Of a DNA stretch of 64,000 bases, positions 15,699 through 33,400 are shown piece after piece. The translations under genes were made by a program, and so were the position numbers. The stretch comes from Paramoeba atlantica (Eukaryota > Protista > Discosea). The DNA is taken from contig CDRNVI010000039.1 in assembly GCA_977017575.1 (NCBI GenBank), forward strand, positions 620,001-684,000, in the 5' to 3' direction. Within the stretch, counting starts at the first letter, position 1. The number at the start of each line of letters is the position of its first letter. Under the pieces are notes generated by a model. The model was not told where the DNA came from, ran no database searches, and saw only the letters and a list, made by a program, of their open reading frames with translations.

Positions 15699-16271
15699 CT
15701 ACCACTGCATATACGGCACAGGATTTGATCGTATCTTTAGGCCCATGGAATATATGTCTTTTTTAGATAGCCATATGTGAGTGATTCCGGATGATCCTTC
15801 ACTGGTGTTCAGGTCCGTAAAAAGACCACTCGCAACTCCGTGGGCGTCTAACCGTTTTTGAGTAGATTTGGAAAAAAGGTTTCCATCTACATTAACATGA
15901 CCTCCACCCTGAACGCCAAGCGGTACAGTTTTAAGATAACGCTTTTGATGTCTATTAAACCCAAGATCAGAAAGGTGATATAATGCCAACTTATTTCGCA
16001 GTTTGGTGGCTTTTGTTTTACTTGTAATCTGCACGTTTGGTTTTGATTTAGAGGATAGCGAAGAAAATTTTGTAATACTAATAGACTGAATTTCGGTAGG
16101 TTGTAGATTTTCGGTAGGTTGTAGTTCTGTCGTACTAATCTGTGGTGCCAACATTGATGCACCATCGCTCTTTGTGAAATTGTCACTAACTGGAATATTT
16201 GAATCTTTGTTCTCCGCTTTAGTGAAAAGAACACATGTAGCTCGTAGAAGACTTCCTGCTATCGGATTCAT
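15699..16271 (-). CDS. Orphan 190-aa ORF inside the repeat island
   Basis: ATG-initiated ORF with no recognisable motif and a short internal duplication (ELQPTENLQPTE). Confidence 0.4.
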   Translation of the reverse strand: MNPIAGSLLRATCVLFTKAENKDSNIPVSDNFTKSDGASMLAPQISTTELQPTENLQPTEIQSISITKFSSLSSKSKPNVQITSKTKATKLRNKLALYHLSDLGFNRHQKRYLKTVPLGVQGGGHVNVDGNLFSKSTQKRLDAHGVASGLFTDLNTSEGSSGITHIWLSKKDIYSMGLKIRSNPVPYMQW

Positions 16272-16337
16272 AGGTAGAACAAATTAGATATACTAGGTTT
16301 TAATGCATAAATATTTATAATAAACCGCAAGTCGAAT

Positions 16338-16462
16338 CAATATCCTAATTCGGAATTAGGATATTAAGCTGAATTAGCATAATACTGAAGGCGAATTAGG
16401 ATATTAAGCTGAAAAAGGTCGAATTAGGATATTCATCCAACTTTGCTAGTATCCTAATTCAG
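16338..16462. repeat. Cluster of GAATTAGGATAT motifs including a perfect 13-bp palindrome
   Basis: AATATCCTAATTC-G-GAATTAGGATATT, plus two more direct copies and one inverted copy. Confidence 0.8.
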
Positions 16463-16865
16463 AAATTTTTTAAGAATAGGAAAAACAAATGTTCTGGATA
16501 TAGCATATTAAAGGCTTATTGCACCTCACTTCTTTCACTTCACTTCCTTCACTTAAACCGTCTGTCGGTTACCGTTTTAATTCGTATTCGAACGGTAATG
16601 TGCCATTTAAACGGTAATGTGCCTATCTAAACCGTAATGCGCAATAAACATTCTTTCTTCTGAAAATATATACGGTAATATTCAAGTTTTTTAAAAAGTA
16701 TTTTCTATAAACTCCTCTGTATACCCCCCCCTCCATAAGTAATTATAAATACGCCTTGAACTCGCACTTTTACTCCCTTATGACTTATAATTCCTATGTC
16801 TTTCATAAGTAATTATAAATGCAACTTCGACCGATTGGATTTTTTTTGTTTTAGGAAAAAGATCC

Positions 16866-16932
16866 TGTCACTACTTTCTTGTCACTACTTTCCTGTCACT
16901 ACTTTCCTGTCACTACTTTCCTGTCACTACTT
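16866..16932. repeat. 14-bp tandem repeat (CCTGTCACTACTTT) x~5
   Basis: Read directly. Confidence 0.9.
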
Positions 16933-17447
16933 AATGGACCTCATGCGTACTGCCACTGCAAGCCAGTGACAACTTGTGCAAGCCACAACGGCCATTTTTC
17001 TCGTGGACTTTACTTCGGTTGTTGTTAGACCATCAAAAAGGTAGGTTGAGAAAAAAGTTCTCTGGTTTCGCTCCATTTTCGAAATGAGTGAAAGTGAGCA
17101 CGCTCTGGATGAAACTCTTAAGTTCAATGAACTCGTTTTTGAGCACGAATGCGTTCTACGTCAAATAATTACAGACGCTCTAGAAACTCAATTTGGCAAA
17201 GTGATCAACAATATACGTTCCGAAGAATCACTAGAACATACACGCCTCATGAGCTTGATAACCTTACTGACGTAGGATTAGAACGATTATCTATTTGAAG
17301 CGCTTATTTGTGAAATTGTGATGGCAAGTATCTAATATAACAACTTTTACTCCCCTCCAGGTTCACCAGTTTCACATCCATAAGTAATTATAATTATAAT
17401 TACAATTATATATATTTTTCCCTCTCTCCCTAAACCCCATCGCCCAG

Positions 17448-20030
17448 CTAGCCTCGTACCCCGCGGCGGTACCAGTCTTGTACTGCCGCCTGTACAATCT
17501 GGGCATTACCTTTCTGGATGGCCACCCCTATGGCCATCAGAAGGTGGGACATGCATCCGTTCTTGTCGGATGTGTGGGCCCGGGCCACCTTGGTTAGGAA
17601 GTTCAAGGTCTCTGGGCCCGGGATCCCGTACGTGGTGAAGGCCAAGGGGTAAAATTCCATCCCTCAGGCGGTCGCCATCTCATCGTGTGAGCGCCGCTTC
17701 GGCCATCCTCAGGGTATGAGAAGGCTCTGCGGCCTCCTTCTCCACGTAGGACGGGGCCAGTGGGTTCACAACTGTGACATCAACTAGGGCGGTCTTCCGT
17801 CCCTGCTGGAAGCATATGTCGGGCCCCCGTCCATTGTCGAACCTCGGTTCGTGTAGGTCCGGTTTGAAACCATACTGCACAAGAAGGTTTCGAAAGGTTT
17901 CCTTGACCTCCTTGTGGCGGGAGGCCTGGGTTTTCCCCTTAACCTTCTTGCAATCCAGTGCGTGTACGCAAAACTCCTCATTGCGGAGGGTTGCACCGCA
18001 CACGCACTGGAGCTCAGGTTCCGAGGTGGGGGCGACCAAGTACCGGAGACGGGCCGCAGTCTCCCACTGCGGGTCCCGCATGTAATACTCCGGCCTGTTG
18101 GGCCATGCGTTCACCCACTTAGTGGAGTGAATGTTCTGGGTCTGTCGCGTGCAGACCAGTTGGGTAGCCGTCGGAGCTTTCCCCAACGCGGCTTCACAGA
18201 GGTTGCGCCGCTGTTCCTTGGCTGACATGCCTTGGGGTCGGCCCTGTAGGGCGTTCTTCGCCTTGGCCTGCATGTCTTCCGCCTTGTGCTCGAAGGGGAT
18301 GGTCCCCAGGAAATCTGCCGTGAAAAGGTTATTGGAGAACGGCGTTTTTCCCAAGGAGCCCATCCCCCCGAGCAAGGCCTCAGCACATGCCAGGACAGCT
18401 TTGTCGACCTGGGTATTGGCCACTTTAGTGACCGGGGGCTCGTGGGTCCTTACGATGCAGTTCCATCGAGGACTCTCACAGAGTCTTAAGAGGGGCAAGG
18501 CGCATTGCCTGCTAATGTCCTTGAGTTTCCCAGGAAGGACCTTGGGGGCCTTGGAAAGCACCCATTCTTCCTCCCTAGCCTCCGACACCCCGACGAAAGA
18601 CCCCAGTAGTTTGACCCCCCGAGGGAGTTGACCATGCGAGATCCGGAGAACTCGGAGAAGAGGTCCTCGCGTCTAGTAGCTACTTTGCATTTAGCGGTAT
18701 TTAGCCGCAGCCCAAGATGCTTCAGCTCCTCGCGGAGGGCCTCTAGGGCTTCCGCGCAAAACTTGGGTTCACCAGCAAAGGTGACGTCATCTAGGTACGC
18801 CCAGACCTTCAGCGCACCTGTGAAGTTGGCCGCCACTCTGGCGATTGCCCCCTGGATCCCTATGGCAAATAGGATGGGAGCCATGGGGTCACCTTGCTTG
18901 ACCCCCCTTGAGCTCGTGATGCATTGGCCTTCCCCAAGGTGAAGGGTACTTGTGGTACCGTAGCTGAAAAGGGTGATGCCCTCAATGGGGAAAAGTTTCG
19001 GATTCCCCCTTACCGCCCTAAAAATTGCCGACCGTGAGATGCTATTGAAAGCGTTCTCGAGGTCTGCAGCCACGATGACCTCCTTCGGCCTGTCCCTGAA
19101 GTGCTGTCGCACATTATAAATTATGTGCTCACACCCCTGCGTGTATTGGGCTCCAAACTAGATGCCCTGAAAGCAAGTGGGGAGATGTTCCCGGATTTTC
19201 TCCAGGGCAAGGAGCCCCGCCACCTTGAGGATGCACCCTCCCAGGGCGACGGGCCTGTAGGAAGAGTGGCGCCCCGCCGGGGAGTCCGGTTTGGTGAATA
19301 GTTTTAAAGACGCCCCCGTGAGCAGTTCCCTCATTGAGGGGGGGAGGGAGTTAGTCATTATCCCGTGGATTATCCACGTGATACAGTCGCGGGGTCCATC
19401 TTCCATGAGGATTGGGACAAGCAGTTCCTTGGTCCATCCCGTAGGTTCGGGGGCGCGGATAGGGGCCAGGCTTTGAGCCTTCCTGGCCACATCGGCGGGG
19501 GAGGGTAGGGTTCCGTGTCTGTCCCTATTGTACCTGAATTTCCCCGCAGTGTAGAGCCCGCCTGTGGGGTGTAGACGCTTAGCCTGTTCTAGGGCCGCCG
19601 TGGGGTTGGCCGGAGGATTGAGGGGCGCCTCCATCGTTTTGGCCGCCCTGGAGAAGCAACCCGCCCTGCACAATTCCTCGACCCGTTTTTTGACAGACCA
19701 CGGGGGGCCGTTGGCCTGACTCGGGGATGGAGCCAAGGTCTCCGAACCCTCTAGATGGGCACGCATTCTCAGTTCGCGCGCTAGCTGGCGTGGCGACAGC
19801 TTGTCCTTGGGGAGAAAAAGGAAACGTTTAACGGCGAGGAGGAGGTTCCAGGCCATCTCGACCTTGCCCTCCACTGACTTGTTAATAAAATCATGGCATA
19901 CACCGGCAGTGTATTCCTTCCAAGCCGGGTATTGGAGTGCGTACAGCTTACGTAAGGACCCCCTCCCAAGGAGCTCTGCTAAGTTTTCGGGGGAAGGGGC
20001 TTGTCCACGCTCCTCAACTGGAGCGCCCTG
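17448..20030 (-). pseudogene. RT / restriction-like endonuclease pol region of retroelement copy 1
   Basis: ORFs 19158-19874 and 18486-19112 share a frame, split by an in-frame TAG (IQFG to I*FG). There is a frameshift in the G-run at ~18615-18620 and a frameshift plus TGA at ~17665-17690. Confidence 0.9.
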
Positions 20031-21546
20031 GCATACCTATGTGTTCTATGAACACTTGTGTGTGTTCAGTAGTTCTATGGTTCAATGAACACTTTTATGA
20101 ACCAATAGAACACTTTTTCGATTTTTTTCCTGAAGTACAAACAATTTTTTTTTGAAGCTTTGTTTCATTCAAATGGCCCCAGATGGTACTACACGACCTA
20201 GATCCTCACGTACATGTAGGTACATGGCAGAATAGGTGGTGCGAGTCTGTGCCATCGATATGATTCCAGCGTCACGTGTTCGTTTACGTTTTGGGGCAAA
20301 CGAGACCGTTTTGTACACATCGGATAAGTAAAGGCTTATACAGGGGTGAAAACTTCCATCTGGGGGGGAGTCTAAAATTTGCAAAAACTTTTCAATTTCG
20401 GAAAATAATACCGCATTCGAGAGGGTGGTTCCCCATGGAAATGGATTGGAGTGCAAATGGATTACAGTGTTATATTTAATTACGGTATTATTTAATTACG
20501 CTTACCTTAAAAGCGTAATTAAGTAATACCGTAATTAAATACAACACTGTAACCGGAATATAATCCACTCGTAAATTACTAATTTTTGAACACACTTTTT
20601 GAATAATTTTTAAGCGCCTAAGCCATTGGATTCGTCTGTGATCATTTTATAAAGGCTTGTGTTTCGTATGAAAGTGAGGCCGATGGTATATTATTTATGT
20701 TTCTCATGAAAGTGGATCGGCTTCCGATACCAAAAAGGAGAAAAACAACTGACAACTCGGAAAATGAGGAGAATTCACAGCCTTTATGGTCTTTGAAGGC
20801 CTTACTCAAAATGAAATCCCTTGGAAATGGGCCAGCGCGAGACATTCCGGCATCCAAGCGCGAAGCTGAGGTACGAAGTGTGCTTCGAGGTAAGGTTGCG
20901 AGAACTGGCGGTAATAGGAAACCGTCTAAGTAAGGAAAGAATTGATGGAATTGTATCTTTGCAAATTTTGAATACCTTGAGGATTATTCGTAGGTTATGG
21001 GAAAAATATTGTTTGTTTGTACCGTATCAGACACATATAAACTCTGAACTTGGAAGTCATAGATGAAAGCTTTCAAGGTGAAAGTGTTAAGCTTTTTAAC
21101 CGACTTTAAGTCGGTCATATTGGATACTGGATTTATTTTTGTATTTGGATTGGTGGCTTCCCATTTTTCTTCGACGGGCACGAAAGATTCCTGTGGGACC
21201 TCGTCCTCTCATTAGAAATTGTTGAGGGTAATAGATAATGCTTGACTAAATGAGGGAAACAATAGTTTTTTGCAACAACAACAACAAAATATTTTGAAAT
21301 GAGAAATGCATTACGTTCGGCGAGTACAAAAAAAGCTGCCACGCGTACTAAGAGAGAACCTCATACCGCGGCATTCTTATACTGCATAGCTAGGGCATGT
21401 GTAATCACTTGGATATGCGCAAAACAAAAAAGTTTTATGAATAATAATCGATATGTTCGTGTGATGTGTACCTCCCCAAAAAGTGTTCAATGCGTTCTAT
21501 GTGTTCAATAAACAAAAAAAAGTGTTCATAGAACACATAGGTATGC
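20031..21546. mobile_element. Non-autonomous DNA transposon with 26-bp TIRs and apparent 4-bp TSD (CCTG)
   Basis: GCATACCTATGTGTTCTATGAACACT at 20031-20056 and its exact reverse complement at 21521-21546. CCTG lies immediately outside both ends. Confidence 0.85.
20465..20549. mobile_element. 85-bp palindromic TA-flanked MITE (CAGTG...CACTG)
   Basis: TA|CAGTGTTATATTTAATTACGGTATTA...TAATACCGTAATTAAATACAACACTG|TA; ~38-bp arms with 2 mismatches. Confidence 0.8.
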
Positions 21547-23449
21547 CCTGGGTTGTCGGGGTGGATTGCTTGCTTCGTGTGGTGGAAGACACCCCCCCAC
21601 CTCCGATGTCCCCCCCTCTCCCGTCGTCCGCTGAGAAATTTTGGGCACATTGGCGGCCGCCGCGATGTGCTCGATCAGGGTCCCGCGAGAGTGCGGGGTG
21701 GGCCCCCCATTACAATGGGATTTTGGATACGGGCCCGCTCTGAGGCTGCCAGCCTCGGCGCAATCCTCGCTGGCATCCGGCATGCCCCCCCCCAGAACAG
21801 GGGATGTGGACTTAGGGCCCGAAGAAAAGCTGTTGGGTGTCGGGGTGGGCCCCCCATTACAATGGGATTTTGGATACGGGCCCGCTCTGAGGCTGCCAGC
21901 CTCGGCGCAATCCTCGCTGGCATCCGGCATGCCCCCCCAGAACAGGGGATGTGGACTTAGGGCCCGAGGACAGGCTGTTGTGTGTCGGGATGGACCCCCC
22001 ATCACAATGGGATTTTGGATACGGGCCCGCTCTGAGGCTGCCAGCCTCGGCGCAACCCTCGCTGGCGTCCGGCATGGCCCCCCCTGATGCGGGGGTGTGG
22101 GAATGGGGTCTGTAATGTGGGGGTCGGGTAGTGGGGTGGGGATGTCCTCGGTTTGAGTGCTCGTCTGTCCCGTTACGTTCACGGGGTTACTGTCCGCGGG
22201 GCCGGAGGATTTAGGCGTTGTACATTTCCGTTTTGCGCGACGTGGTCCCGGGTTGGCTTCGATGCACCCTCTGCGGAGGTTACACCGGACTAACTCGGCC
22301 GACCACCCCGAGTCAGCTATCAGTCCCTCCGTGGGCGTGAAGCTCCAGCAAGCCGTTCCGCCCTCCGACACGAACGGCGTCCAGGCTCCTGCGAAGCACT
22401 GGGCTACACCCAGGGCGTGGCATAGGGAAAAGGGGATATGTTCGCCTGGGAGATCAGACGGCGTCTCTATGCTTGCTCCTGCTCCCGATCCGTCGAAGAC
22501 TTTGACGTGGGGACCGTGGGAGGGGCCGTGGTTTGGAGTGAGCAGAGAGGCCCAAATGCACTCAGCCTCTGCCAGGTCCTCATCGGTCACCAGGTATGGC
22601 CCTCCCGGCTCATTGGTCAGGCTTATGCGGTCGGGGGGGACCCCCAAGGTAAAGCCCACCGCTTGTACGAAACTCTGTAGGGGGTGTCTGGCAGGGACGG
22701 GGACCTGGATGTGTCCGGCCAAGTGGGGTCCGAGGTGCAGGTTGACCCTAGTCCATGGTTCTTCGGAGGGTTGCGTCGAAGATGAGAGTTGGTGTCCGCC
22801 TTGCTGGTGGGGAGGTGATGGGTAAGGGCCGCTAGGGGCGTCGGTTGGGGTGTTTGTGAGGGCGGGAGGTTTGGCGGCAAGGGGGAGGGGGGGGGTCGTC
22901 CACTTCCAAGTTGTGCGTTTCCGTGGGGCCGGGGGCGGGGCCGGGGGAGGGGCCAGGGGAGGGGCCGGGGGAGGGGCTGGGGGAGGGGTCGGGGGAGGGG
23001 CCGGGGGGGGTGCGTACAGGTTTTGGAGTTGTTGGTAGAGATGGCTGAAGAGGTCGGCGGCAGAGGCCCACTGTTGTTCCGCAATCATCATAGCTCCCTG
23101 GCGGTGCTCTGATGAGAGACGGGATACCATCGCCCGGGCCGCGGCCACTTCGTGGACGGTTTTGTGCTCGATCATACGTCGCTGGTCCCGAAAAACCTGT
23201 CCGCAGGTCTGACACAGGTGGGCTTTGTCCTGTTCGGTAGAGCTGGCGATGTCTGTATTCCTGACGGGCGTCCTGACAGAGGAGGTCAAGCCACTCGGTG
23301 TAGAGGGCATCCCTCGTCGCCAGGTACTCTCTCTCTTTTTCTCGGACGGCGCATGACAGCCGGTTGGCTGTCACTTCCCTCTTCAACCCGTAGGGCACTC
23401 CGTCGTCTCGCTGGTGTTTGATGTAGGTACCCAGGAAATCCTGGTTCAT
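21547..23449 (-). pseudogene. ORF1-like region of retroelement copy 1 (C2H2 finger, Pro-rich tract, 2A-like motif)
   Basis: CQTCGQVFRDQRRMIEHKTVH, a PPAPP tract and LRRGCIEANPGP. Frameshifted between ORFs 22832-23449 and 21526-23310. Confidence 0.75.
21695..22082. repeat. ~146-bp tandem repeat (~2.6 copies) inside the retroelement coding region
   Basis: ACAATGGGATTTTGGATACGGGCCCGCTCTGAGGCTGCCAGCC recurs at 147- and 145-bp spacing. Confidence 0.9.
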
Positions 23450-23527
23450 CTTACCTATGAGAGCTAGCTGTTCCTTGTGTGATGGGGCTCTGCCAAGGGG
23501 TGTGGAGGTTTGAGGGGGGATCTGTAC

Positions 23528-23938
23528 CTAACCTTGTTTTCCTAAGAATCGGGGGTGAAAGGGATTTGGCCTTGTCGGCGTATGACTCGGAGTCATGTGA
23601 AGAAGTGTTCCTGGGGGCGAAAGATACACTGGACGGCGAGCGTGTGTGAGGTCCTTCGGACTGTCGTTGAAGGGGCGGTCTCGAGTTCGACCTCGCGCGG
23701 GAGGACGAGCTTCTGGGGAATGCTTCTGGGGGATGCTTCTGGCCTCTCGGGAGGTGGATGTCTGCCTGAGTCCGTTGTTAACGGGCCCAAGGGTGCTAGG
23801 TTTGTCCCAAATGATACGGGACGCAGTGCCGGTTGTGGATAAACAGACTGGGCACAACCGGTGGGTGGGGGAGAGTGGTTCGAATTTCGAGCCACAGTAA
23901 GCGCAGAACAAGAGTCCCTTGAGCGGGAGTTCTGACAT
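23528..23938 (-). CDS. Retroelement ORF0 with C4 zinc finger (copy 1)
   Basis: First ATG after the SL-like sequence; CAYCGSKFEPLSPTHRLCPVC. Confidence 0.6.
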   Translation of the reverse strand: MSELPLKGLLFCAYCGSKFEPLSPTHRLCPVCLSTTGTASRIIWDKPSTLGPVNNGLRQTSTSREARSIPQKHSPEARPPARGRTRDRPFNDSPKDLTHARRPVYLSPPGTLLHMTPSHTPTRPNPFHPRFLGKQG

Positions 23939-23979
23939 GGGGGGGGAGAAGTAGTAGTGAAGGAAAGGAGGAAATAAAT

Positions 23980-24016
23980 CAACAAGGTACAGAAACTGTA
24001 TCTTTATCGTTAAGTT
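23980..24016 (-). other. Spliced-leader exon-like sequence forming the 5' end of retroelement copy 1 (AACTTAACGATAAAGATACAGTTTCTGTACCTTGTTG)
   Basis: Has the kinetoplastid SL start AAC(T)TAACG, the core ACAGTTTCTGTAC and terminal TTG. It is not followed by a GT donor. Confidence 0.85.
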
Positions 24017-24040
24017 CAAAAAACTTATAATTTATACTTA

Positions 24041-24221
24041 CTGCCCCCCCCGTTTAAGCGCACCTCGTTTTCCGTGAAAAGTGCGCTTAAACGGGGGGGT
24101 CTGAATCGTTATGTAAAAAAAAAATTGGCGCCGCTTCGCGCCGCCGGCCCCCTTCTCTTCAACTCTGTGTGCGCTTAAACGGGGGGGTCTGGCCGGGTGC
24201 GCTTAAGGGGAGGGGGGACAG
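24041..24221. mobile_element. TA-flanked MITE A
   Basis: TA|CTGCCCCCCCCGTTTAAGCGCAC ... GTGCGCTTAAGGGGAGGGGGGACAG|TA, with two internal GTGCGCTTAAACGGGGGGG copies. Confidence 0.8.
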
Positions 24222-24459
24222 TATAATTACTTATGGAGGGGGAAGTAGGTTAATGTTGAATTACTGTCGCAGGCTTACAAAATAGAACAAGTAAGAAACA
24301 ATCCCAATAGTATTTACTCATAAATATACAATCCTCCATTCTTCGAAAGCAATGCTTGAGATAGTGTCAGACCACGACACCGTTCACTATTTCGCGTCCG
24401 AACCGCCCTTCTTTTTGCATTTATTGCCAGTGGTGCCCGACTCCAGATGAACAAAAGGG

Positions 24460-24902
24460 TCGATGCGTTCTTTGTCAAGTCAATTCTTTCGGCGTAGTCT
24501 TTGCGGCCTTCGACTAACATTTTCTCATGTTGCCCACGTCATTATGGCGTGCAAAAAGAGAATTGCCTGGGCGAATGATGGAACGAAGTACGTGCGCGCA
24601 TCTATCAACTTTGTCCAAAAATTGAACATCCATTGGACAGTAAGGGGGAACGTACTATGTCCACGGTTCTCAAAAACGTTTGGAACAGCTTCACTGGAGA
24701 AGTGAATTCCTAACCTGCATCGCTCCGAGCTAAGATCAAAGCGTTCATCATCGAGAAGCTTCCTCCTAGCCCCGAAAAGTTTAGGGTTCTGCTGAGAGAA
24801 GTGTACCGCGCCAAAGCCTATGTCGAAAGTTCTGAGTAGGAGACAGACGGTGTAGACGAAGTAAGAAAGAAGCTTCTCGAACTTGGTGCCATTCAATATC
24901 AT
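24460..24902 (-). pseudogene. Possible hAT C-terminal dimerisation-domain relic
   Basis: FWTKL...VPSFAQAILFLHAIMTWAT*ENV loosely fits FW...P.L...A..L....SA..ER. Weak match. Confidence 0.3.
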
Positions 24903-25129
24903 AACAAGCGTAAGACAGAAACAAGCATTACCCCCCCTTTCATAATTCTTTATAAGTTCTAACCGAAGAAGCTTCCTAGTTTTCTACAAATTTATATAAA
25001 ACCAGAAAGTTCTAGAAACAATACTGGTAAAAACGGAGCTCGCGGCACTTCGCGCCCCGTTGTTCCTGGGTTGCGTATCCAATGAGTAATATATTATTTG
25101 TTTCTGTATTAAACTTAGGTTTTGTATTA

Positions 25130-25505
25130 CTGTACCCCCCCTAATTATCTGTCACACGTCACCCCCCCCCTAGTTATCTGTCACTTTTTGACACTTCGAT
25201 TTTTTTGGTCGACTGCCCCCCCTAGTTATCTGTCGCTTTTTAAAAATAGGTAAAATACTTTTTTCCAAAAAAGGTCATGAAATGAAACTTACATTCTTTA
25301 TTTTTGTATTTCAAGCAAAAGTCGTGCGTGGTGCTATTATAAACCGTTTCTGTAATTCCATGTTCTGAGTTTTTTTTGTGACAGACCCCCTCCCTAGTTA
25401 TCTGTCGCACACTGATCCGCCTAGTTATCTGTCACGCCCCTACCGCCCTAGTTATCTGTCACCTTTTCGCGAAAAGTAGTGACAGATAAGTAGGGGGGGG
25501 TACAG
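25130..25505. mobile_element. TA-flanked MITE B with subterminal CTAGTTATCTGTC repeats
   Basis: TA|CTGTACCCCCCCTAATTATCTGTCAC ... GTGACAGATAAGTAGGGGGGGGTACAG|TA, with several internal direct copies. Confidence 0.85.
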
Positions 25506-25519
25506 TACTAAGTGTTTCT

Positions 25520-26700
25520 GTGGTAATTTTATACAATCAACCAAAGTCCTATTGTTTTATGCCACGCAAGAAGGGCAAAGAAAAGTATTCCGAGCCGCGC
25601 AGTTTGGTTACCCAATACTTGTCAATATCAGGTCAACTATCTCAACGAGAACTTTGTCGACGGAACGAACGAGTGAGGGCGTACGTTGAAACTCATGGTG
25701 AAAAGCATGTGCTCTCTCTTCAATTGTCTGAACTCGTACTCCGAGCTAACGCTTTATGTCGGCATGTTCTGTTTTCTCAAATAGAAATTGAAGAATCTGT
25801 TGCAAGGAAAGAAATTTTACGTACCGAAGTTACCGAAATGTGGTCCACAAACACCGAGTGTTTGTGCACTCGCAATATACTGCTGCTCTTATTTACAACT
25901 TAGCCACTGCTAGTGCCCGTCGAGAAGCGGCTACTACTCTCGCAGAGCGTAGGGCAGAGGCTCCAAGTCAAACTTCTCTCGATGAAATCTCTCGTGACCC
26001 CCCCGTCAAACTTCGAAGCGGAAGAGGAGAGGGCCCGCCTTGCCCAGACTTCATTCGATCAAGGAAAATTTCGTTGATGAAGTTTGTACGGCAGCCGTTG
26101 CATGTCTTTCATCGGAAAAACGCAATATGTGCGATGATCTTGCTCTGCTGGATCAAATGAACCACTTTATTCATCTACGTTGCAAGCGCTGCTCCGAAAT
26201 TTTTCTTTCTCTTTGTGAATTGACATACAACCGCCACCTGAATCATATCTGCCCTGGAATTTCGAAACAATCTGTGGCGTTAGTGCAGGAGGAGAAGACA
26301 CTATACGAATTTTGGCACACTGATTTTCCTACCATCGCTGCCTCCACCAATATTCCTCTATCGGTCGCCCTGCACTTCGCGCAACAGATTGGACAACGAT
26401 GGCCGTACAATGCGCCCGAGAGGTGACATTTTGCGGACCATGCCAAGAGAAGTAGGTACTTTGGAAATCGACATGGCCGTCTTGGAAGCGAAATTATGGC
26501 GCCAAATTCATGAGCTGGTCGACAGCTACGAGTTGTTTGGAATTGCTTTAGACGGAGGCACCGATCAGGTTCTCGGGGAACACATTATGGTAGCGGTGCT
26601 ATACGTAGGTCCTCACCACTGGGTACTGCCGCCCATGTATCATGAAAAGCATGGTGCGTTCAATGGTGCCCAAAAAGATTGACGAGCTATATCGGCGTTT
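25520..26700 (+). pseudogene. Fragmented hAT-like transposase
   Basis: Overlapping broken ORFs. LFGIALDGGTDQVLGEHIMVAVLYV resembles the hAT first catalytic-Asp motif (FSIALDESTD...LAVFVRYV). Confidence 0.55.
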
Positions 26701-27001
26701 GGGTATTTTGGGCGAAAGCGACTTTGCCTCAATGAACAATGCTGTTCATCGTGCTGTAAGATGCTACCTTTGGGTTCGACCCATAGTCACTGATTGCGAT
26801 TCCAGTAATGCGATTCAGTAATGTCACATAAGTACAGTAGTCGACAAGGCAGTATATCTCCGGAAAAGATGGCGGTGTACATTTTCGTACACTACAATAT
26901 TAAGCGATTGGATTCTCAAATCGATGCGATTGTTGAATGAATATTTATGACACATTTCTGATGTGTGCGAATTCAGTAAAGCATTTTCTTATAAACGAGA
27001 G

Positions 27002-27487
27002 CACGGGTTAACATGCCTATATCACGTTAACATGCCCCCCCCGGCATGTTATCGTGATATAGGGCTTTATAACATGCCCTCCCCTTCTGATTTTCTCGGC
27101 GAAGCCGAGCCTTTTTTTAATACACTATATTTTCCTCTCGTTTCTTTAATCTGTATTTTTTTTTATAATGTGTTCATTTTTCATTGTCGAATCAGGGTCA
27201 TACTCGTGAGGAATCCTGTGAAGAAGAATTCTCTGAAGAAGAGGAGGAGGGTGAGGAAGAGGAAGACAAGCAGGAAGAAGAAGAAGAGGATGATGATGAG
27301 GAAGACGAAGCTGCTGATGAAGGTGTTGAGCTCCTGATAGTAGAGTTCTCCGACCTTTTTCATGTAGAATTTTTGTGTCGATTGCTTTCCTTATTTTTTC
27401 AAACGGAGGTTCAGAAATTTAACATGCCTGTAACACCATAACATGCCTGTAGCACCATAACATGCCCCCCTGGCATGTTAACCTGTA
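27002..27487. mobile_element. Short TIR element with AACATGCC subterminal repeats and an acidic (E/D-rich) coding relic
   Basis: CACGGGTTAACATGCC ... GGCATGTTAACCTGTA; multiple TAACATGCC copies near both ends. Confidence 0.65.
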
Positions 27488-27689
27488 ACGCCGTTTACAT
27501 CAAAACTTGGTTCTCTTTTATACCCATTTGATATCTACAGTACATTTCTAAAGAATTTGTTTGGGTTTTTTCCTTAAGTTCTTAACGCTGGTCTTGTTTT
27601 CCCCCTTGCGAACGTTTTTCCTATTTCTATTTCTATATTTCTCGTTCATGCAAAATTTGAATGATCGGTGAGATGCATCATACACCGTA

Positions 27690-29691
27690 GGAAAATAACA
27701 GAAGGAAAGAAAAAATTTGGTCTTTTATTGAAATGCACCGTAATGGCTCCGTCGAATGATCAATTCTTTTATTAGGAGCATGGGAGGAAGATGCATGGAG
27801 AGGAGGGTGTTGCGGAGAAGTCACAGCCGCGATTCCTTCCATGATAGTTCCTTCCCTGCTGGGGGAAGAGGTGTCGGGCTCCTGGAGGAGGGCACTCAGA
27901 GTCTCGCTCGGTGCCTGCCGGGGCTGGGGCGCGGATGAGGCCAGCGACCCTCGGTTCTTGTGTCTGGGGCATGTATCCCCTGCGTAGATTGCATTTGACA
28001 ACCCGGGTGGTCCATCCCGTTTCGCTGACTAGGGTTTCTGTAGGGAGGAAACACCATAGCACGCCCTCCTCGTATTCACGAGGTTTCCAAGCTCCAGTCA
28101 GCACTGGGGGAATACCGAGAATCTCACTCAGACCGGCCGGGATGTTGTGGGCTGCCTGTAGTCCGGGGGCGTTGATGAACCCGTGCATGGATCCATCGTA
28201 CACCCAAATAACGGCCGCCTCGTTGTTACGGGGGTTGTACGGAGGTAGGGACAGGCTGACCGCTACTCGTTGAGCGCGATCTAGGCCCTCCCGATCTGTG
28301 ATAGGGGTGGTTTCGCCAGCACTGTCTTTGAGGAGGAGATTTTCCCCAGGGACCCCTAAAGTGTTCCCCACTGTGCCGAGGAAAGCTTGGAAAGAGGAGT
28401 CCGGGGGGCAGGGGATAGTGGCATATCCGGCTCGCTCCGGCCCAAGATCAAGTAGGAGCTTGAAGGGTTCTGAAACAGAGTCGACCTGGGGATTGGTTGG
28501 CGGTGCAGGTGTAGCCTGCGAGGGGATTAGCTTCGTCGCTATCCCAGGGAAAGGTGTGGGAAGAGGGGGAGAACGAAAGGTGGGCTGGGGCTAGGGTGGG
28601 TCGCCAGCCATCGCACTCGCCTGTGCCCTTTGGAGGTGGGCCTCCATCGTGCAGAACTCCTCATATAGAGCCATGAAGGAGGAGAAGCGATCGGCCTTGT
28701 TCCTGAGGGCTTCCGGGGCGTGTTCCCGAAGCAGGGCCCGTGACGCAACCCTTAGGCGTTTCGGCCCGTGCACCTTGATGCGATGCGCCTGGAGGGCAAC
28801 AATGTGCGGCTGCGTAATGCCGCATTCGGAGCAAACCAGACACCCTTCATTAATGAGATAGATACGCTCCTCGATGGGCTTGTGGGTGTCGTGCAGCGTC
28901 CAAACGGCTTCGAGTGTAAGGGCCCGACGTTCACGGGCCTCTTTCTCCATCATTGATGTTACGTCGTGTTCGGCGCTGAGGGTCACAGCCAGCCATAAGG
29001 TGACTGCGCATCTTCCTGTCTCCGCGGAAAAGCGATTTGAGCCGGTTCGGGCAGGAAGGAGCTTGAGGCGGACAGCGTCCATGGATTTGAACTGCTGTGC
29101 CATTGTGGGTAGGGATAACGACCGCTCACCGGGTGGCGGGCCATCGCTGTTCCGGGAGCGGCTCCGAGGAGAGATGGAGCGCGGGGGTCTTCGGGTTACC
29201 GACCGGTGTCGAGAGGACCTAGGAGAAGAAGCAGAGAGGGGAGGAGGGATCCCGGGGGTTTTTCGTCTTAGCACGCGCGCGAAGGTCTTTTCTGTGCTGC
29301 GCTCGAAGGGAAATGCACGCATCACAAAAGCACATATCCCGCCTGGCGGGCATAAAGGGGAGGCCACAAAAGTCGCACGCGCGGGACTTGAAAGGGGTCT
29401 TTGCACGGACTTCAAGGTCCGGCCTCGCCTTCTTCAGCTCCTCGATAGAGAGCTGGTGTAGCCCCACAGTCTCGGTGGAGAAGTGGGGGCTAGAACCTCG
29501 CCTGAGAGGGGTGGTAGAGCGTCCCCCTGAGGTCGAGGTAGGTGGGGAATCGGGCCCACCGGGTGAATCCTTGCGCCCCCGGTAGCCTCGTCGACGTCGT
29601 GTCGTGGGCATGTATCGGGGGGAGAGAGGAGTAGAGGTAGAGAAAAGAAAAAGGATTCAACAAGGTACAGAAACTGTATCTTTATCGTTAA
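27690..29691 (-). mobile_element. Second, divergent member of the same retroelement group (5' part only, RT absent)
   Basis: SL-like head, C4-finger ORF0 (29219-29611), C2H2 ORF CSECGITQPHIVALQAHRIKVH, and W.F.PTE.L...GW....V.CNLRRG block homologous to copy 1. Confidence 0.8.
29658..29691 (-). other. SL exon-like sequence at the 5' end of retroelement copy 2 (TTAACGATAAAGATACAGTTTCTGTACCTTGTTG)
   Basis: Identical to 34 nt of the copy-1 head; the first 3 nt (AAC) are missing. Confidence 0.85.
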
Positions 29692-30147
29692 AGATGGGGG
29701 GTCCATGGGGGGGGTCCAGGGGGGGTCCAGGGGGCATACGTCGTTTCAAAATCTTGATTTTCGAAATCGAGCGCGGGGAAGTGGTAGAGTAAGCCGCGGC
29801 GATGAATTTCCACCCCCCCCCCCACACCTGGGCGTACCCCCCCCTGGTACGCGCGGAAGGGATCCGACAAGGTCAAAAACTCCGAAATTTTTGGGGTACC
29901 AAAAAAAAAACGTTTGACCCAAAAAGTAAAAATATTATTTTTCCAAAATCGACTCCTAAACCGTATTTGGAGAGTTTTGGACCTCAGCTACCATTCTACG
30001 ACGTTTTTGTCGACAGATTCGACTCCTGCTCCGACTGGTAAGGCATCCAAAACGGCCCAAATATGGTGTAAAATTTCGCAATTTTTGTCGAAAAATCGAG
30101 CTTTTTCCCCCAAAAAAATGGATTATTCATGATCTTTTGGAGATTTT

Positions 30148-30260
30148 TCTTTTTTAGGCTCTTCGTTAAACGCGGCGGTAGTTTTCAATGCGAAGCGCAC
30201 AGCATGAGTGACTTCTAAGTTGAAAACAACCACCGCGTTTAACGAAGAGCCTAAAAAAGA
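30148..30260. repeat. 113-bp palindrome (41-bp arms, 31-nt spacer), copy 1
   Basis: TCTTTTTTAGGCTCTTCGTTAAACGCGGCGGTAGTTTTCAA / TTGAAAACAACCACCGCGTTTAACGAAGAGCCTAAAAAAGA. Inverted copy at 37246-37358; half copies at ~76-135 and ~52645-52690. Confidence 0.9.
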
Positions 30261-30406
30261 ATTTGAAAAATTATAATACTATAAGCGACTTTCGTAGACT
30301 AAAAGTTAGTACTAGAAATTTGCACATTTTATGAAAGCTGCGCATCTTAAAAATATGAGCGCAGGAATGTGACCAGGCAATCTAGGCACTTAAACGGTAT
30401 GCTCCC

Positions 30407-33400
30407 TCACGCAGTTTCAAGTTCAGACTCTAAGCGAAGCAACTTGTACATCTCGACCGCACCCTGAAGTTTCTGGTTCTCCACTTCAAGCTTACTTCGT
30501 TTATCCATTTCTGAGTTAAGTGCAAACTCAATCATGCGGCTCATTCCTACCTGTTGTTTAAACTCATTGAAAACCACGTTATGAAATGTAATATAAATAC
30601 CCATTAGCTTGTTGCTAAATTCATCGACAGATTTGTAGCGTTCCTGATGCTCCTCGGTTTCCAAAGCAAAGCGATTTAGAAAATGGCTCTTGTCGATTTT
30701 TCGCACGTCCTGTAGGTTCTTCGAAGACTGCGCTTCGATTTCTTCCAGTTTTTTGCTGTGTAGTTTCCTGAGATAATCCACTTTTTCTGAATGTGTTGAT
30801 GACATACGCATGTTCCATGTTTGTGTCGAAATATTAAAGCTTTGTATCCAAGTGTTTTCTACCGCTGAATTCCAAGCAAGGAAAGTTGCCGAAAACAGTT
30901 CCAAATATCGGGGAGTTGTTTCTTGAAGGGAAGCTAATGTCTCTGATCGACGCTCTGCAATATTCTGAATTTTTTGCTTTTGGCGCGCATGCTGAGATCC
31001 TAAAGCATCCATCTCAGCAGCGTATCCTCGCGTCATTTGTGTAATACGAGTTTCATATTCTTGGGCTTTGAGTTTTAGTAAAATTCTATCGCATTCTTGC
31101 ACTATACTTCCACGTTCAAGTGCGTATTGATAATGCGCAACAAGTCTTTCATCTTGCTCTTGACCTTGCATGCGTTGAATTTCGAATGTGTGCTCCTCGT
31201 TTAATACCTGGGACTCTTCAATATAAACAACAAGTTTTTTAGAATACTCTTCAGAACTCTGCGCACGACCTTCTGCCCCCATCAAAAGTGATTGCCACTT
31301 TTTCTCAGAAGCGCTAAAATCATCGAGTGAGCGTTTCTTATCTGCTTCAAAATGATCATTAAGATTCGTGCGCTGTTCTTCAAGCTTAAAAAGATTTTCA
31401 TTACGAGTTGCTTCACTAGCCTGTTTAAAAGCATTTTCTAGTTCTCCGCGCTGCAAACAAATCTCTGCGCTGGAATTATAAAGAATCAGCTTCTGGCCTG
31501 ATAGGAATTCTTGGCAATCATGCCTATTTAACATATTACTGTCATACAAACTAACAACTTCGTGTTGTTCGAGTTCATGATGCACTATTCGGAAATATTC
31601 ATCCAAATACAGGGCCTCTAAACGACGACGTTCCTTTGCTTCATCTACAAGGAAGGAATAGAGAACTTCGCATTGACGTTTCTCTTCAGAAACTTTTCCC
31701 AACCGTTTCAGCATGCCTTCGAGTTGACTCTCTTTGTCTCTATCTAGTTCATGCATACTAATTTCCGCTTCTTTCAGCCGTGTTTCATAATCGTCGCGTA
31801 TTCCATGTAATCGCTCATTATACCGATCCACCGTAGAGACTACTATCTTACTTGCCATACTGGTGCTCGTCTCGATAATCTGTCGACAATATTCCTCGAA
31901 GGAATGCAAATCTTTTCTGGAATCTGATTCCAAAGCCCGTAGATTAGAGATGTCTTGGATAACACTATCTTTAAACATCTTCTCAGTGCGTTCCTGATAC
32001 TGCGAGAATAATGTCCGGTACGAATTGCAGAGCGATTGGTGAAGTCCTTCGTAAGCTGCATATTGTAGCTTATACCGTTGATTAAACATATCAACTTTTC
32101 GTTGCAAAAAGAGAGAATTCTGGTCAATAATTCCATCAAATTTGATCTGCATAGCAGCTAGCTCCGCTTCATTCTCAGATTCCAAATCATTCAAAAATGG
32201 TTTCACGCAGCGTTGGTCGAACGATATGAAATCATTAAGATTCCTATTGAGTGCTGCTTCTAGATTGGCATTCTTGATGTGGTTGTCCGCAAGTTTTTCC
32301 CGTAGCCTTTTTTCGGTTTCCGTAGACATTATCTCCCTTTGTTTCAGGTTGTCGATAAGAAGGAAGTCGTGCTCTCGTACGACTCCAAAAGACGGAAAAA
32401 TAGTTTGTTCAAACAGTTGATACTTTTTGCTCATGGCCACAGCCTGCTCATTTAAAATTGCTGAAGTTGCATCTCTCATGTTCTTCGACTCAACTTGCAG
32501 AGAAGATTTCTCAGCATTAATTTTGTGACCCATTGTTTTCATTTGTTCATTAGCGCGGTTCATTTCCTCCTGATAACCATTGGAAAGTCCTTGAAGCTTT
32601 ATGAAATGTGCGGAATATTCACAAAGCATACCAGTCGATATAGCGTATCTTTCGTCCGCAAATTCTCGAAATACCCTTTCCCTGTTTTGATGCTCTTCCG
32701 AAACACAAGCACTAAGTCTTTGCAAATGAGAATTGTCTTCGTTCTTTTCCATGGTGCCTGTCTTTTCTTCAAGAGAAGATACTTTATCTTCCAACATTGT
32801 ACATTCTCTAGTTAGCTCCACACGTAGCTCGGTAAGGGCCGCTTCGTTTTCTTCTCGAATTCGTCTTATTTGCGTATCATGCTCTTCGTTCATCATTATA
32901 ATTGGATTACTAGAACCTGACAAACCGTTCCCCGTCTGGGAATCATACTCAACGGATTCACCCCTGTTCCTTGTGTTGCCTTTGAGCTTGGCAGATTCTT
33001 CAATCCATTTTCTGCGAAGATCTTTGGTTGCATCGGCAACATGCCTTTGAATAACGGCCTTACTATGCTGCGCGAGAGAGGTTGTAAATGCCGACGTCAT
33101 GTTTGCAATGGCCGACCGCGTGCTCGTACCATATTCAAGTGCAACCGCCCGCAACGATGCCTCCATTTCAGCGGCTCGCTCAAATCCTATTGTGGAATGT
33201 GACTTCTTGTAATCCTCAAGATCGTTTACCTGTCGGCGCAACCGTGCTATTTGGGCTTCTTGCTCTTCTATTTTTTCAGTAAGCGATCCTTGCTTTTTCT
33301 TCAGTTCCTCATTTTCTTTGGAAAGTGCAACATCTTGCGCATAGTACTTTTCTTTTGCATTTTCTATATTTTCACTTTGAACAACTCCATGTGATGAAAT

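Follow-up and report, generated by a model that had tools for sequence, protein, structure and literature searches.

Retrotransposons that begin with the spliced leader (SL) of their host are described here from a 64,000-nucleotide (nt) stretch of a Paramoeba atlantica assembly (GCA_977017575.1, contig CDRNVI010000039.1, positions 620,001 to 684,000 of the forward strand), which in its whole length is called the window. Two retroelement copies on its minus strand, copy 1 and copy 2, each start with the exon of the host SL RNA gene, and the same head, outside SL genes, is found on many unrelated retroelement families of the genome. These heads have probably been written into DNA from trans-spliced, leader-capped RNAs of the elements, a reading to which a probability of about 60% is given. 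Kinetoplastid mRNAs need a capped leader for translation, and gene promoters are all but absent from the genome, so that making a full-length, translatable and heritable RNA is a real problem for a retrotransposon.

Leader heads of two retroelement copies

The head of copy 1 (24016-23980, minus strand) has 37 nt and reads AACTTAACG...CCTTGTTG (in full AACTTAACGATAAAGATACAGTTTCTGTACCTTGTTG), and that of copy 2 (29695-29658, minus strand) has 38 nt and reads ATCTTTAACG...CCTTGTTG (in full ATCTTTAACGATAAAGATACAGTTTCTGTACCTTGTTG). Each matches the 38-nt host exon at 37 of 38 positions: copy 1 starts with AACTTAACG, one T shorter than the exon start AACTTTAACG, and copy 2 has an A-to-T change at position 2. 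The exact stretch common to both copies is 35 nt long (24013-23979 and 29691-29657) and consists of TTAACG...TTGTTG plus one A, past which the sequences are unlike (ATTTATTTCC... versus AATCCTTTTTC...), and the original prediction that identity ends one base after TTGTTG is thereby confirmed. The 20-mer ACAGTTTCTGTACCTTGTTG has exactly two matches in the window, at 23980-23999 and 29658-29677 on the minus strand, where 0.02 are expected by chance and none of 100 shuffles gave two; a repeat finder lists the pair as direct repeat D10. By sequence, 20-mer count and repeat listing alike, the shared SL-exon-like sequence at the two minus-strand 5' ends is real. The claim that copy 2 lacks the first AAC was wrong, as its start reads A-T-C-TTTAACG (29695-29692) and the head is a full 38-nt leader with a substitution at position 2.

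In both copies the leader is joined directly to a pyrimidine-rich 5' untranslated region (UTR), which is followed by ATG. The UTR has 41 nt in copy 1 (23939..23979, minus strand; ATG at 23938-23936) and 46 nt in copy 2 (29612..29657, minus strand; ATG at 29611-29609). In both copies the base after the head is A, where a gene would have its GT donor, and searches of the window revealed neither an SL intron pattern nor a third copy of the leader. As predicted, the heads therefore stand in the window without donor, intron or SL array.

Spliced leader genes of the host

Genome-wide statements here and below rest on 84 fetched loci together with the matched strings of pattern searches, and duplicated contigs (haplotigs) inflate some of the counts. 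A genome search for the leader followed by GT leads to the true SL RNA genes, in which the 38-nt exon AACTTTAACG…CCTTGTTG is followed by the intron GTATGAGAAGC. The intron (GTATGAGAAGCTTCGAACTC...) occurs at 39 places. Of the thirty that were fetched, 25 agree in their upstream flank (…ggtaaagcccttgtt) and contain the 38-nt exon and the intron; all 25 of these array genes read ...cccttgtt, then AACTTTAACGATAAAGATACAGTTTCTGTACCTTGTTG, then GTATGAGAAGC..., and none is interrupted (0/25). They are arranged in tandem units of about 2.56 kb, with 12 on contig C97, nine on C107 and others on C3, C11, C24 and C74. As in other euglenozoan SL arrays, the unit also contains a 5S rRNA gene, which was the only match to Rfam in the array unit, no model recognising the SL RNA itself. 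Three stem-loops are predicted for the 105-nt SL RNA, the splice donor being part of stem I (z = -6.7). In run X1, the RNA nature of which is a guess, four contigs with a depth of 48-1448 have ends that join the leader to four different sequences. Some array genes are variants with an exon ending in ...CTGTCCCTTGTTG or ...ATAAAGGTACAG (L047-L050, C11:3829 and 6722; L070/L071, C97). Two SL genes lie 297 bp apart in C11 and in C24, and the array spacings of 7.3 kb in C74 imply insertions in the spacer.

The 37-mer is the host's own spliced leader. It had been taken for an SL from the window, and this holds because it equals the exon of intron-bearing, arrayed SL RNA genes elsewhere in the genome; the real host leader does not differ substantially from it.

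Leader copies dispersed through the genome

The leader 34-mer is found at 594 places (three mismatches at most) distributed over most contigs. As there are only 39 SL introns, about 555 leader copies lie outside SL genes. Twenty-seven distinct non-gene contexts have the leader, then a short pyrimidine-rich UTR, then the ATG of several families. The leader-headed classes sampled are long interspersed nuclear elements (LINEs) with poly(A) tails, the families of copies 1 and 2, a tyrosine-recombinase element and other, unclassified elements. The placement of the leader at retroelement 5' ends away from SL genes is thus borne out for several families, and no family member was found in the SL arrays, where 25 of 25 genes examined are intact.

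Relatives of copy 1 (75-98% identity), which were found via the UTR and the first open reading frame (ORF1) and not via the leader, all have the leader or a remnant of it at the same joint. Their leaders are intact or have one change (L081-L084), are decayed (L080), have an internal deletion of 18 nt (L076) or retain the last 7 nt only (L077/78). For copy 2, an exact-anchor search with its head returned the window copy only, and a mismatch-tolerant search gave three close copies including that in the window, the others being at C26:24970 and C40:203444, with an identical joint in all three.

An A-run of at least six lies within 20 nt upstream of the leader in 10 of the 27 contexts, often as the poly(A) tail of another LINE (…cccttattaattgc(A)n), and it is seen at all 14 visible heads of the family that was fully surveyed, the MPPDDSFDAN LINE family. 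ORF1 of the poly(A) LINEs (L006, L015, L021) begins about 40-50 nt past the leader and has a conserved ...GSWDQF.GN.HLI...STY.E.LYTTP motif, with sub-threshold Pfam matches to LsmAD of ataxin-2/Pbp1 (E = 9e-5 to 3e-3).

The query of leader plus GT matches 449 places at one mismatch or fewer, and the non-gene matches in the 12 loci examined all belong to a family resembling short interspersed nuclear elements (SINEs). In this SINE-like family (L031-L042; e.g. C2:38803, C3:18107, C4:128703), the last 25-28 nt of the leader are followed by GTACATTTT and then by a hairpin and ...gtaggggacg. Its head starts near exon nt 11-13, close to the site (nt 11/12) at which SLACS/CRE insert in trypanosomatids.

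Unspliced SL RNA has also been retrocopied outside the arrays, at L045 (C6:27061-27127), L058 (C83:~133000) and L059/L060 (C87:74364 and 106922). These retrocopies consist of the exon and the intron as far as GGGGCTTA, followed by A-runs. A further SL RNA retrocopy (L053, C25:199053) is 5'-truncated and stands behind the poly(A) tail of a LINE.

Scrambled 5' end of the leader copies

Position 2 of the leader is A in all 25 fetched array genes and in 7 of 7 genes of the pattern survey. What is new here is that this invariant position is scrambled in the dispersed copies, 93 of which, taken in contig order, have T in 52, A in 30, C in 6 and G in 5. In a local sample, at least 89% of copies retain positions 3-6. 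The ATC start of copy 2 is the commonest dispersed-copy variant in the genome. Private leader defects include the missing T of copy 1 (at positions 4-6), the T at position 2 of copy 2 and CTTTGTTG at C3:645480, and the copy at C4:319296 has one as well. Among the 15 near-identical copies of the surveyed LINE family, position 2 is A, C, A, T, T, A, G, T…, and four heads of this family are cut back to (AA)CGAT. Since the base varies among near-identical siblings, the defect must arise afresh with every insertion and is not passed on. The SL RNA retrocopies begin with AGCTTT or gtaCTT and thus, with their first two bases altered, have the same defect as the element heads.

Cap 4 of trypanosomatids contains base-methylated nucleotides at cap-proximal positions. 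The simplest reading of the scramble is that reverse transcription stalls at the modified, capped 5' end of an SL-RNA-derived leader, and the change at position 2 would reflect a base modification of the cap-4 type. The stalling of reverse transcription at cap 4, proposed in the original prediction, is right in kind, since it is the 5'-most bases that are scrambled, and wrong in the detail cited, the loss of AAC from copy 2. The scramble at position 2 would then record in the genome how a cellular reverse transcriptase reads the modified cap.

Stacked relics as a record of trans-splicing

A leader followed by a partial leader was found in 79 cases in an unbiased survey of the genome. In 13 of these stacks the second part is the 16-nt TTTCTGTACCTTGTTG and in two it is a 22-nt relic, ATACAG.... 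Both types start immediately past the only two AGs of the leader, which means that leader-headed transcripts were trans-spliced at these sites and re-inserted. These 15 stacks show that trans-spliced element RNAs do return to the genome, as does the relict SL of dinoflagellates to which the heads had been likened. Triple stacks occur at C3:706055, C20:57441, C35:33558 and C63:378799, and one member of the surveyed LINE family has an AG-relic stack (C48:301054). Copies 1 and 2 of the window have no stacked relics. Stacks can also be partial on the 5' side, as with AACTTTAACGATA followed by ACTTTAACG (L007, L010, L023).

The tyrosine-recombinase element offers another kind of trace. The 34-nt sequence joined to its leader recurs 39 nt upstream, and there it follows an acceptor, …gacAG, as would fit an element copied from trans-spliced RNA. 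The unit has the leader between two copies of the 34-nt ACTTTTCTTATTTG...AAAAGT, the upstream one after AG; it forms an array with a period of 5,093 bp (L001-L004, C1:9752-25063) and is also present at L029 (C3:629877).

Origin of the leader heads

An RNA carrying the capped leader of the host would be reverse-transcribed to its extreme 5' end, and each insertion would thereby begin with a DNA copy of the 38-nt leader. For copies 1 and 2, the template RNAs would be those of LINEs with a restriction-like endonuclease (R2 superfamily), and the leader would be joined to the element RNA by trans-splicing from SL RNA, as on every kinetoplastid mRNA. The large ORFs of the window all have minus-strand orientation and both copies are in sense within this polycistronic run, so read-through transcription is available to them. 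The clean heads of copies 1 and 2 presumably arose by trans-splicing of this kind. Mobilisation as an SL-trans-spliced mRNA, which the original prediction proposed, is favoured by the identity of the leader with that of the host, by its scrambled 5' end and by the AG relics, and it is disfavoured by what is found at the joint and by the lack of a leaderless master.

Several observations weigh against this origin. The joint reads ...TTGTTG/A..., without AG, and canonical trans-splicing therefore cannot yield such an RNA again from a leader-headed copy. In the MPPDDSFDAN LINE family, the leader is present on 15 of 15 copies with a complete UTR, and an assembly-wide search (15 exact copies; 17 at three mismatches or fewer) found no leaderless master with an AG acceptor. 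None of the copies of this family is joined at the strong polypyrimidine-AG of the UTR itself, 9 nt before the ATG. The commonest relics, a 10-nt TACCTTGTTG (about 30) and a 7-nt CTTGTTG (about 15), do not follow an AG. About 50 relics of 10, 7 or 8 nt are placed in this way genome-wide (e.g. C1:65009, C2:405032, C19:603094). The 10-nt and 7-nt relics stand before different UTRs, which indicates that slippage or jumping of reverse transcriptase also acts. That the 10-nt relic is a trait of a single family was considered and rejected, as it precedes at least five different UTRs. A full leader-leader stack (0-12 nt between) was searched for genome-wide and not found, so that the stacked heads expected from the original prediction exist as AG-relic and triple stacks and not in this form. 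The RNA evidence consists of contigs, without read starts, and no reverse transcriptase of copy 2 is seen in the window.

The absence of an acceptor at the joint suits another origin, in which the leader has been captured as a heritable part of the element and RNA 5' ends are remade at the genomic leader by an internal promoter or by 5' processing. This is rather improbable, but several facts speak for it. Full-length copies of one family are leader-headed in 15 of 15 cases with no leaderless master, and the joint variants of that family (A, AA or AATTAA plus TTTTTC after the leader), which are simple indels and not alternative AG sites, behave like inherited subfamily markers (A, AA, AATTAA). 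Odd stacked heads are common to different contigs (L007/L030, L082/L084), which are possibly haplotigs, and unrelated families have a similar A(A)TT(A)TTT-pyrimidine start after the leader. There is also a precedent in Pr77, the internal promoter of trypanosomatid ingi/L1Tc, which binds SL-promoter factors (PMC8190864). On the other hand, a captured leader is hard to reconcile with a sequence that is letter-perfect across families whose proteins are only 38-47% identical. Position 2 is not A in about two-thirds of the dispersed copies sampled, and in the fully surveyed family it varies among near-identical siblings, which is more in keeping with a modified cap derived from SL RNA than with a plain transcript. 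Full cap 4 formation in trypanosomatids needs the SL RNA intron and the Sm site. A-runs or unrelated repeats stand upstream of the heads and no promoter is common to them, and an Rfam search at E<=1 over 16000-30500 found no ribozyme like that of hepatitis delta virus (HDV) in either head, although a divergent ribozyme could escape it. The AG-relic stacks, moreover, show that trans-splicing of element RNA does occur.

A stronger form of such a capture is doubtful, namely that leader-headed copies are themselves the sources and remake an RNA with its start exactly at the genomic leader without trans-splicing, the SL exon having been domesticated as a portable 5' module by several unrelated classes of retroelement. 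The role of the domesticated leader might be that of an initiator or internal promoter, or it might serve SL RNA as a landing pad for setting the 5' end. If so, the elements would have 'self-leadered' translatable mRNAs where all other mRNAs depend on trans-splicing.

The non-AG relics bring in a further alternative, the addition of the leader at the cDNA stage, either by a jump of reverse transcriptase from the 5' end of the element RNA onto a leader-bearing molecule, such as a free SL exon or another mRNA, or by SL RNA priming of the second strand, in a chimera like the U6-L1 chimeric pseudogenes. R2 reverse transcriptase is able to jump end-to-end between templates. The partial 5' stacks (L007, L010, L023) are in line with this, and so are the frequent 10-nt and 7-nt 3' relics off the AGs, which look like jumping or slippage around the leader, and the retrocopying of SL RNA itself in trans. 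As the source of the heads it is nevertheless very unlikely. The heads are the exon alone and always end at G38, while the SL RNA retrocopies keep the intron to GGGGCTTA, so the donor would have to be a rare free-exon intermediate. Besides, the joint is constant within families and not scattered as jumps would leave it.

Insertion into SL RNA genes in the manner of CRE/SLACS/CZAR, with the leader as a remnant of the target, is suggested by the reverse transcriptase and restriction-like-endonuclease architecture of copy 1 and is rejected as next to impossible, because the array genes fetched are uninterrupted (25 of 25 intact), the window has no SL intron, promoter flank or array, the exon stands undivided at the 5' end with no break between nucleotides 11 and 12, AT-rich repeats and not the remainder of an SL gene make up the 3' flanks, and about 555 heads are dispersed over most contigs.

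Trans-splicing before reverse transcription thus remains the preferred origin of the heads, and the missing acceptor at the joint makes the formation of the 5' end a testable question.

Structure of the two copies

Copy 1 (17370..24016, minus strand; 3' boundary approximate) is a decayed LINE of the R2 superfamily, which has a restriction-like endonuclease. It has a Cys-rich N-terminal ORF and several frame breaks. A piece of reverse transcriptase is recognised at 18489..19157 (minus strand; Pfam RVT_1, E=3e-16), and its best solved-structure matches are R2 proteins (8gh6, E=1.5e-7). At the C-terminus (17683..17950, minus strand), a CCHC motif and a restriction-like endonuclease motif (KPD...D-V-T-V) are read from the translation, and no family model confirmed them. 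A look-up of this C-terminus in the ESM Atlas gave unnamed eukaryotic reverse-transcriptase-like clusters only and no clade. The 3' end lies in AT-rich TATAATTA-type sequence and has no poly(A) tail. Between the ORF1-like and pol-like parts, the translation has a 2A/StopGo-like motif, ...GCIEANPGP (22228-22305, minus strand). The long ORF also contains a 12-nt tandem repeat (GGGGCCGGGGGA type, PLPRPLP-like) and three 145-nt tandem repeats (22913-23025 and 21640-22076, minus strand). Copy 1 is interrupted by an AT-rich insertion of about 1.5 kb (20030..21547) with 37-nt terminal inverted repeats (I3) that are 92% complementary. No coding frames are seen in the insertion in the frame map, and a 42-nt perfect-type hairpin lies within it at 20462-20552.

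The sequence directly before the head of copy 1 (24017..24110, minus strand) consists of a 19-bp G/C-rich hairpin and ATAAATTATAAGTTTTTT and is listed with repeats I16, I17 and D12. This stretch belongs either to copy 2, as its 3' end, or to the AT-rich target into which copy 1 inserted.

Copy 2 is represented by an ORF1-like coding 5' part with frame breaks (27700..29695, minus strand), below which no recognisable retroelement coding is found down to about 24017. Its protein is 38-47% identical to that of copy 1 over about 170 residues. The description of the pair as two divergent retrotransposons is therefore secure for copy 1, on account of its reverse transcriptase, and only probable for copy 2.

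The copies are placed head to tail, copy 2 before copy 1, and the composite (window 17300-29700) recurs at C40:203460-211237 with 97-99% identity, either as a haplotig or as a segmental duplication. Identical pairs on different contigs (L081/L083 and L082/L084) suggest that the assembly probably contains haplotigs. Upstream of copy 2, between its head and the stop codon of a kinesin gene, lies a 115-nt palindromic hairpin repeat with 42-nt arms (30147-30261), which has a very high copy number (summed contig depth up to ~58,000 in DNA run X2). Within 29700-30400, the head of copy 2 is directly preceded by a repeat of about 440 nt, which is also found upstream of the heads in L081/L083 and beside the truncated relative in L041.

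Comparison with known systems

Leader-headed retrotransposons in Euglenozoa were not found described in full-text searches, the coverage of which is incomplete and gives no proof of novelty, and no paper was found on the leader 20-mer. Papers on Bodo saltans, Diplonema and the trypanosomatid mobilome make no mention of leader-headed elements.

R2 elements with an HDV-like ribozyme are co-transcribed with host sequence and likewise need a defined RNA 5' end, and some R2 RNAs keep upstream host bases. The heads described here differ from them in that no match to an HDV-like ribozyme is found and in that the retained host sequence is a trans-acting leader and not the flank of the target.

Pr77, a promoter of 77 nt that is specific to its elements and has ribozyme activity, gives rise to unspliced transcripts. 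It is a hallmark of ingi/L1Tc/RIME/SIDER (PMC1874656; PMC8190864). Both Pr77 and the leader head are short conserved sequences at the extreme 5' end that are common to many kinetoplastid retroposon families and give a translatable RNA without gene promoters. By description they differ, since the shared head here is the leader exon of the host followed by a pyrimidine-rich UTR.

CRE1/CRE2, SLACS and CZAR of trypanosomatids and NeSL-1 of nematodes have a reverse transcriptase with a C-terminal restriction-like endonuclease, live in trans-splicing hosts and are associated with the leader. Copy 1, with reverse transcriptase, then CCHC, then the restriction-like endonuclease, has this CRE-clade architecture, of which copy 2 shows none in the window. 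The 5' end of SLACS RNA consists of leader bases, since its transcription begins at +1 of the SL gene that the element interrupts. CRE-clade elements occupy a fixed position in the exon of SL RNA genes (PMC12278014). By contrast, the SL genes examined here are intact, the whole exon heads the element, the insertions are dispersed, and the copy 1 family is found in AT-rich TATAATTA-type sequence. Pr77 and residence inside SL genes are the known solutions of trypanosomatids to the problem of making a translatable element RNA, and the leader heads are a third outcome, reached at scale.

The closest likeness is to the relict DinoSL in retrogenes of dinoflagellates (PMC5585692; PMC6050394; PMC12014239). 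In both cases a leader that is added to RNA has become DNA-encoded at the 5' end of retroposed units, and 5'-truncated stacked relics start after an internal AG of the leader. The host here is a euglenozoan with a leader of the kinetoplastid type, the heads are mostly clean and full-length, and many relics are not placed after an AG. The carriers demonstrated here are retroelements (restriction-like-endonuclease LINEs, poly(A) LINEs, tyrosine-recombinase elements and a SINE-like family) and not retrocopies of host genes. The AG-relic stacks amount to a fossil record of trans-splicing, of a kind otherwise known mainly from dinoflagellates.

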